Part shown: piece by piece, positions 46,520 through 47,233 of the stretch
Layout: every line of letters begins with the position of its first letter
Position numbering within the stretch: position 1 is the stretch's first letter
Source: Dimorphilus gyrociliatus
Taxonomy: Eukaryota; Animalia; Annelida
NCBI GenBank assembly: GCA_904063045.1
Contig: CAJFCJ010000006.1
Span: forward strand, 1,785,463 to 1,849,462
Length of the DNA: 64,000 nucleotides
Reading direction: 5' to 3'
The notes under the pieces: generated by a model
What the model was told of the DNA's origin: nothing
Database searches by the model: none
Seen by the model: the letters and a program-made list of their open reading frames with translations, nothing else
Translations under genes and position numbers: made by a program

Positions 46520-47233
46520 ATGTCTATAAGATCAGTTAGAAGATTTGTTGGTATAATTATACATGTAGATTACTGGTAAGTAACCTATGTTATATATATT
46601 TTAATAGTGTATTTTAAACAATCTTTAAAAGTGAATTAAATACACTGTATGAATGTTATTTTAAGGATGACAAGTTATCAAATTAAGACGTTAGACATAA
46701 AGCAAATTTAATGACATCCCCTGTCAGGTTGCAGTGTAAATTAAGACTTTCCTTTTGTTTTTTAGTGTAGTTCTTAATATATCAGTTCTAATTATTAAGT
46801 TATATTTGCAATTTATTATTAACTTGTAATATGATATCACAGTAGGGGAGAGAGAAAAACAAAGATTATACATATTAATTTTTCAGCTACGCTTGACCAT
46901 CTTATGGAACAAGATTTTCCGAATTAAAAATTATGCTTGTGGATAAATTCCCGGGAATACACGTTAAGCACTCTTTTGGCTCCTCTCAAGACACTTTTGA
47001 AGTGTTTGTTAACGGCAATCTCATTTACTCTAATGTGCATAAAGAACAAAAGGGTTTACCAGAAATCGAAGAGGTTCACCAAAAACATAAAATATAAAAT
47101 AGCAAAATTTTAATTAACTCTGTTTTTATTTTATTAATTTAAATAGATTATTGACATTGTAGAAGAGGAGATTCGAAGATTAACAGTTCAATCAACTGGT
47201 AGAAGAAGGAGTAGTGCTTGCTTTATTCTCTAA
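46520..47233 (+). CDS. Rdx-family selenoprotein, MIEN1/SELENOW-like (CxxU plus CaaX)
   Basis: Exons 46520-46575, 46887-47073 and 47147-47233 splice to MSIRSVRRFVGIIIHVDYCYA(U)PSYGTRFSELKIMLVDKFPGIHV...TFEVFVNGNLIYSN...GLPEIEEIIDIVEEEIRRL...RRRSSACFIL*. The in-frame TGA is at 46894-46896 and a SECIS lies downstream. The true 5' end is uncertain. Confidence 0.88.

Follow-up and report, generated by a model that had tools for sequence, protein, structure and literature searches.

Does the in-frame TGA at positions 46894-46896 of the window (the whole stretch of Dimorphilus gyrociliatus DNA analysed here, 64 kb in length) end translation, or does it encode selenocysteine in a protein that begins upstream of it? 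The public record holds a protein of 75 amino acids at this place, DgyrCDS4616 (CAD5115659.1; UniRef A0A7I8VHJ4), found at 100% identity by word-indexed search; it begins at the first Met downstream of the TGA and has neither the Rdx fold's strand 1 nor its redox motif. The initial annotation had read the TGA as selenocysteine in a gene resembling MIEN1 and SELENOW, and had expected standard gene calling to truncate or miss it; truncation from a downstream Met is what the public record contains. We consider the locus very probably to be a functional selenoprotein gene, decoded via a SECIS element in its 3' UTR, whose predicted product is a 109-residue Rdx protein with a C-x-x-U redox centre. 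A literature search found no paper linking Dimorphilus with selenoproteins.

The coding sequence lies on the forward strand, with a start at ATG 46520, a TAA stop at 47231-47233 and 109 codons in the spliced frame. Eighteen codons from this ATG end in the beta-strand-like peptide I-I-I-H-V-D-Y, and the exon closes at 46575 with GAT TAC TG before the donor GTAAGT. The acceptor TTTTCAG leads into a C at 46887 that completes the Cys codon (TG/C), followed by TAC GCT TGA, so that both the split codon and the TGA stand in the sequence as initially read. After the TGA the frame is open for 59 codons up to 47073 (GAG before GTTCAC) and then, from 47147 (after AAATAG), for 28 codons to the TAA; these are 87 codons, for a first estimate of about 85. 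At the window's G+C content of about 29%, about 8% of random codons are stops (about one in twelve), and the chance of 87 open codons after the TGA is about 6e-4 by our own calculation from that G+C content, so the open frame is unlikely to be accidental.

RNA evidence was taken from one public run, in which half of the words sampled from 46400-47500 are present and whose contigs were aligned to 45000-49500. One spliced contig of 1157 nt matches the window with complete identity in five pieces (45707-45872, 45939-46097, 46419-46575, 46887-47073 and 47147-47631), separated by four gaps that are all GT..AG. Both junctions predicted from the DNA, 46575/46887 and 47073/47147, are used in this contig, and the exon with the TGA therefore belongs to the mature RNA; the TGA is neither skipped nor spliced out, and the SECIS candidate described below is retained with it. 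The three GT-AG exons first proposed hold as coding exons but not as the full transcript, which has five exons, the first two non-coding, with the first coding exon beginning at 46419. An in-frame stop lies 24 codons 5' of ATG 46520 in the assembled mRNA, and this ATG is therefore the earliest possible start. An AATAAA is found at 47658-47663, directly past the 3' end of the contig. The D. gyrociliatus locus is thus a real, expressed gene, with a moderate contig depth of 34 compared with about 350-400 in its neighbours. Its features, with the evidence for each ("relative" refers to the related species compared below), are:

45707-45872, forward strand: non-coding 5' exon 1, without a long ORF (spliced contig, GT..AG joint to 45939)
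45939-46097, forward strand: non-coding 5' exon 2 (spliced contig, GT..AG joint to 46419)
46419-46575, forward strand: exon 3, with the remainder of the 5' UTR and the first coding part (ATG 46520, 18 codons and the TG of the Cys codon; sequence and contig)
46576-46886, forward strand: intron of 311 nt that splits the Cys codon, GT..AG (contig joint 46575/46887)
46887-47073, forward strand: coding exon with C-Y-A-U and most of the Rdx domain (sequence, Pfam and contig)
46894-46896, forward strand: TGA, codon 22, proposed selenocysteine (in frame in the spliced mRNA, identical in the relative)
47074-47146, forward strand: intron of 73 nt, GT..AG (contig joint 47073/47147)
47147-47233, forward strand: last coding part, with the C-terminal helix, basic patch, CaaX box and TAA (sequence and relative)
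47219-47230, forward strand: CaaX box C-F-I-L, predicted geranylgeranylation site (sequence; C-R-V-L in the relative)
47234-47631, forward strand: 3' UTR up to the end of the spliced contig, the true end being at least 47631
47274-47337, forward strand: SECIS-like element, form 2 (Rfam SECIS_1, 22.1 bits, below the gathering score of 35; conserved in the relative)

The 5' leader of 426 nt (45707-46519) is made up of the two non-coding exons and part of the third, and carries several upstream ATGs and short uORFs. Such a leader is unusual for an mRNA that is translated well, or for a small gene of housekeeping type in a genome this compact.

The genes around the locus include FEN1, an IRS-type PTB gene, a desaturase and COPG. 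Immediately upstream lies a FEN1-type flap endonuclease gene (43198-45325, forward strand) with an XPG_N domain and a basic C-terminal tail, and contig depth at its 3' end is about 10 times that of the selenoprotein gene. Downstream, a convergent gene with an IRS-type PTB domain (48443-49189, reverse strand) looks FRS2/DOK-like and begins with M-G-C-S-N-G-K, a likely myristoylation signal; its transcript ends at 47730, which leaves about 100 nt between the ends of the two transcripts. This order is kept in the relative, where the PTB gene again lies downstream on the opposite strand (L001 2251-2976, reverse strand). Further along are a single-exon ORF of 427 codons (52805-54088, reverse strand) with a cytochrome b5 domain and a fatty-acid desaturase domain of the front-end type, and an ORF of 915 codons (60434-63181, reverse strand) with no Pfam match at E 0.001; the 231-codon ORF next after it has a weak match to a right-handed beta-helix.

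Comparative evidence comes from one related species, represented by a 3.3-kb contig (L001) from another sequencing project. A HMMER search of 1.8 billion representatives with the 59-residue piece yielded this one close relative (a 57-residue ORF, 87% identical), and a second match was rejected as a repetitive false match; word-indexed searches returned nothing beyond the protein annotated in the window and that relative. The 57-residue ORF takes the internal Met as its start and continues into the intron, which is the same mis-call as in the public D. gyrociliatus record. When the relative is read in the frame of the window, the exon lengths (187 and 87 nt) are identical, the splice sites and phases are kept, and the TGA is in place within an identical Y-A-U-P-S-Y-G-T-R-F (U = TGA). 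The initial annotation had named an orthologue with Cys or selenocysteine at this column as a check, and the relative has the TGA there with synonymous changes around it. Even the split Cys codon differs synonymously (TGC in the window, TGT in the relative). Exon 1 of the relative was not found on the 3.3-kb contig. Codon changes between the two species are distributed as follows:

Exon start to internal ATG, TGA included: 15 codons, 5 with synonymous changes only, 1 non-synonymous (Ser to Thr)
Internal ATG to the end of the TGA exon: 47 codons, 22 with synonymous changes only, 6 non-synonymous
Last coding exon: 29 codons, 7 with synonymous changes only, 10 non-synonymous

Because the synonymous pattern is found on both sides of the TGA, purifying selection acts on the protein across and upstream of it. 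As read from these codons, constraint upstream of the internal Met cannot be explained by the annotated 75-residue product.

What kind of protein is encoded? The 59 residues after the TGA match the Pfam Rdx family (PF10262), scoring 28.1 bits (cut-off 22.6) along positions 12-67 of the 74-position profile, and the uncovered start of the profile is the place of strand 1 and the C-x-x-U motif. In the spliced frame this place is taken by I-I-I-H-V-D-Y-C-Y-A-U, with Y-C-Y-A-U directly after the first beta-strand. The block that follows the motif in the Rdx family, FEVFVNGNLIYS, is present in the frame after the TGA as first noted, and membership of the family is further given by the PF10262 match above cut-off and by the position of the TGA in Y-C-x-x-U. 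The sole Rdx-family match in a sequence search of the PDB was human MIEN1 (2LJK; E 0.013 with the exon piece and 0.006 with the 75-residue piece), in an alignment that covers the FE-x-x-x-NG-x-L-x-x-S block and extends into the C-terminal helix. In the ESM Atlas, the nearest entries to the 75-residue piece were two chordate clusters labelled "Migration and invasion enhancer 1 family" (0.91 and 0.90), with 203 of 256 features in common. The structural model covers the truncated 75-residue part and has three strands and one helix (pLDDT 63), which is consistent with the last four elements of the Rdx fold; a Foldseek search of this truncated model against Swiss-Prot models gave only chance-level matches (E about 1).

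The likeness to MIEN1 and SELENOW claimed at first is upheld as membership of the Rdx family, with MIEN1 as the closest solved structure and MIEN1-family clusters nearest in the Atlas, but not as a name. A phylogeny of the group places all of its invertebrate members in the SELENOW2 branch and derives MIEN1 from a duplication of SELENOW2 in jawed vertebrates (PMC13134290), and for this reason SELENOW2/MIEN1-group selenoprotein is a better name for the gene than MIEN1 orthologue.

The last residues of the predicted protein are G-R-R-R-S-S-A-C-F-I-L, in which a basic patch precedes a CaaX box with a final Leu. In human MIEN1 the last four residues are CVIL, and GGTase-I attaches a geranylgeranyl group to their Cys (PMC6738349). 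Between the window (CFIL) and the relative (CRVL), the Cys and the Leu are kept through synonymous changes and the middle two residues differ, and the basic patch is also kept (R-R-R in the window, R-R-K in the relative). Judged from these residues, it is somewhat probable that the CFIL tail is prenylated.

The gene might instead encode an ordinary, soluble SELENOW of the W1 type, with a CaaX-like end that arose as a lineage-specific accident without prenylation and a likeness to MIEN1 that is functionally uninformative. We regard this as improbable. The tyrosines of the MIEN1 ITAM are Phe here, the surroundings of the locus are not syntenic with those of MIEN1 or SELENOW2 in vertebrates, and the relative has Arg, not a classical aliphatic residue, at the second CaaX position, all of which would fit a W1-type protein. 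It accords poorly with the PDB search, in which the mouse selenoprotein W structure was unmatched even at E 10 and MIEN1 was matched (that structure is 2NPB; PMC3527542), with the MIEN1-family identity of the nearest Atlas clusters, and with the retention of the CaaX Cys, the final Leu and the basic patch between the two species.

A 3' UTR SECIS element is what the proposed decoding would depend on, and one candidate was found. The Rfam SECIS_1 model aligns over its full length at 47274-47337, placing AUGA at 47282-47285, the apical AAA at 47298-47300 and the 3' UGA at 47324-47326; the unpaired AAA opens the apical loop and is followed by a mini-stem of three pairs (form 2). The AUGA lies 48 nt past the TAA stop and 312 nt past the UGA in the mRNA. 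The E value of 0.51 refers to 4227 families on 6 kb and corresponds to about 1e-4 for that single family, and a scan of the 64 kb gave no second SECIS match up to E 10. A loose SECIS pattern matches 4 sites in the window, where chance alone would give 2.5 (per 128 kb), and is therefore unspecific when taken alone; it bounds the chance of a site on the right strand within 400 nt downstream of the stop at about 0.01. By minimum free energy the candidate folds no better than shuffled sequences (z = -0.94). The kink-turn pairs of SECIS elements lie outside nearest-neighbour energy models, and we therefore give this result little weight.

Since an Rfam scan of the relative's loci (4.5 kb) did not list a SECIS element at E up to 1, conservation of the candidate was judged pair by pair. 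AUGA, AAA and UGA are unchanged in the relative; helix 2 has 9 of 10 standard pairs in both species and keeps its internal purine-purine mismatch, and its changes comprise one compensatory pair (C-G to U-A) and two wobble-compatible single changes. For the relative's element, folding gives the shape that is expected (z = -2.7). Identity between the two species across this region is as follows:

SECIS core and helix 2: 80% identity, no indels
Coding exon 46887-47073: 78.6% identity, no indels
40 nt of UTR directly before the SECIS candidate: 45% identity, with indels
Intron 47074-47146: 54% identity, with indels

The 3' UTR past the SECIS candidate (47338-47560; L001 800-1010) is 66-70% identical between the species, with almost invariant blocks such as 47341-47356 that hint at further regulatory elements. 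A perfect TGACGTCA palindrome (CRE-like) at 47324-47331 overlaps the 3' UGA of the candidate; the relative has TGACGTTT there, so the palindrome is probably incidental.

If the TGA were a true stop, the product would be the 75-residue DgyrCDS4616 translated from the internal Met, or nothing, and the hairpin would be a chance resemblance. This is exactly the product that the public annotation gives, the SECIS score is below the Rfam threshold, and the chance frequency of the loose pattern leaves room for an accidental hairpin. Such a product would lack strand 1 and the redox motif, however, and it models poorly (Atlas 0.51, with the pLDDT given above); synonymous evolution continues upstream of its Met and on either side of the TGA; the hairpin core and helix 2 are conserved, with one compensatory change; and a TGA 177 nt before the last exon junction would normally be expected to bring about nonsense-mediated decay. 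Termination at the TGA is for these reasons very improbable. A decaying pseudogene or non-coding transcript with an accidental Rdx-like frame, for which the long 5' UTR with its many upstream ATGs and the contig depth below that of the neighbours could be adduced, is scarcely credible for a frame that is intact except for a single TGA, has 27 synonymous-only against 7 non-synonymous changes in its main exon, and recurs with identical splice sites and exon lengths in the relative.

Selenocysteine at the TGA, which we prefer, is supported by the place of the codon in the motif, its retention in the mRNA, its conservation and the SECIS-like hairpin, as far as sequence evidence goes. In the proposed mechanism, the hairpin would recruit a SECIS-binding protein, the Sec-specific elongation factor and Sec-tRNA, and UGA codon 22 would be read as selenocysteine. 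No tRNA gene was found in the 64-kb window; the annelid Capitella has 34 selenoproteins (PMC3473315). The product would be a thioredoxin-like Rdx protein. Its C-x-x-U redox centre would lie in the loop that joins strand 1 to helix 1, and its CFIL tail may be geranylgeranylated like that of mammalian MIEN1. A protein so prenylated would be tethered to the cytosolic face of a membrane and could act there as a thiol/selenol oxidoreductase. By analogy with SELENOW and MIEN1, this activity would be expected on protein or glutathione-linked thiols at the membrane surface.

For annotation, the result corrects the public record CAD5115659.1 / A0A7I8VHJ4 and gives the selenoproteome of this model miniature annelid genome one more entry. 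It also illustrates a general error, in which gene callers re-start selenoprotein genes at the first Met past the UGA. Human MIEN1 has 115 amino acids, and the representatives of the chordate "MIEN1 family" Atlas clusters have 72-73; these short clusters probably reflect the same start-after-UGA truncation in fish annotations.

Selenoproteins of this family are already known in invertebrates. SelW2 is a selenoprotein in fishes, frog and elephant shark, with Rdx12 (MIEN1) as its Cys-containing relative in tetrapods (Mariotti et al., 2012; PMC3316567), and selenoproteins of SelW2 type occur in Trichoplax, Nematostella, Lottia and amphioxus, with two in Capitella (Jiang et al., 2012; PMC3473315). 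A study of 340 genomes (2026; PMC13134290) reports selenocysteine-containing MIEN1 in ray-finned fishes and a change from selenocysteine to Cys in amniotes, in agreement with the initial statement that some fish MIEN1 proteins have selenocysteine and mammalian ones Cys. What is new here is one further gene of the SELENOW2/MIEN1 group, an annotation fix and not a discovery, and it adds nothing to what is known of selenocysteine decoding or of the distribution of the family.

The CaaX tail is a small, testable lead on the age of the membrane-anchored form of MIEN1, and prenylation is not among the topics of the SELENOW2/MIEN1 phylogeny (PMC13134290). Should this tail share its origin with the MIEN1 tail, the combination of selenocysteine with a conserved CaaX box in a protostome would make the anchored form ancestral. 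We offer tentatively, at somewhat less than even confidence, that a membrane-anchored, prenylated form goes back to the bilaterian ancestor and did not originate in vertebrates, and that the ancestor of MIEN1 was a lipid-anchored selenoenzyme. Vertebrate SELENOW2 would then have lost the anchor and amniote MIEN1 the selenium, and a tractable small animal would be at hand for studying the membrane redox reaction of MIEN1-type proteins.

Among known members of the family, the gene shares with SELENOW (SELENOW1) the Rdx fold, C-x-x-U chemistry, size class and, as proposed, SECIS-dependent decoding, but the PDB search at E 10 found no detectable sequence match to it. SELENOW is not known to have a CaaX tail. 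With SELENOW2 it shares the small Rdx fold, the C-x-x-U after strand 1 and the (candidate) 3' UTR SECIS element; it differs in that the window holds no TRPM7 neighbour, and its place in the SELENOW2 branch is taken from the literature (PMC13134290). It differs from MIEN1 in the ITAM tyrosines, which in MIEN1 belong to two Y-x-x-L/I motifs in helix 1 and the loop after it (Y-L-E-L and Y-P-G-I are F-S-E-L and F-P-G-I here, in the 2LJK alignment), in the length of the N-terminal extension (11 residues here, about 20 in MIEN1), in one additional residue between the selenocysteine and helix 1, and in the absence of ERBB2/GRB7/PGAP3 or SLC4A1A/UBTF synteny at the annelid locus. Since MIEN1 dates to the duplication of SELENOW2 in jawed vertebrates, the annelid gene would be at most a pre-duplication co-orthologue of it. 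In common with MIEN1, it has the FE-x-x-x-NG-x-L-x-x-S block, an I-R-R motif in the C-terminal helix, and a terminal CaaX box ending in Leu, which is CFIL here and CVIL in human.
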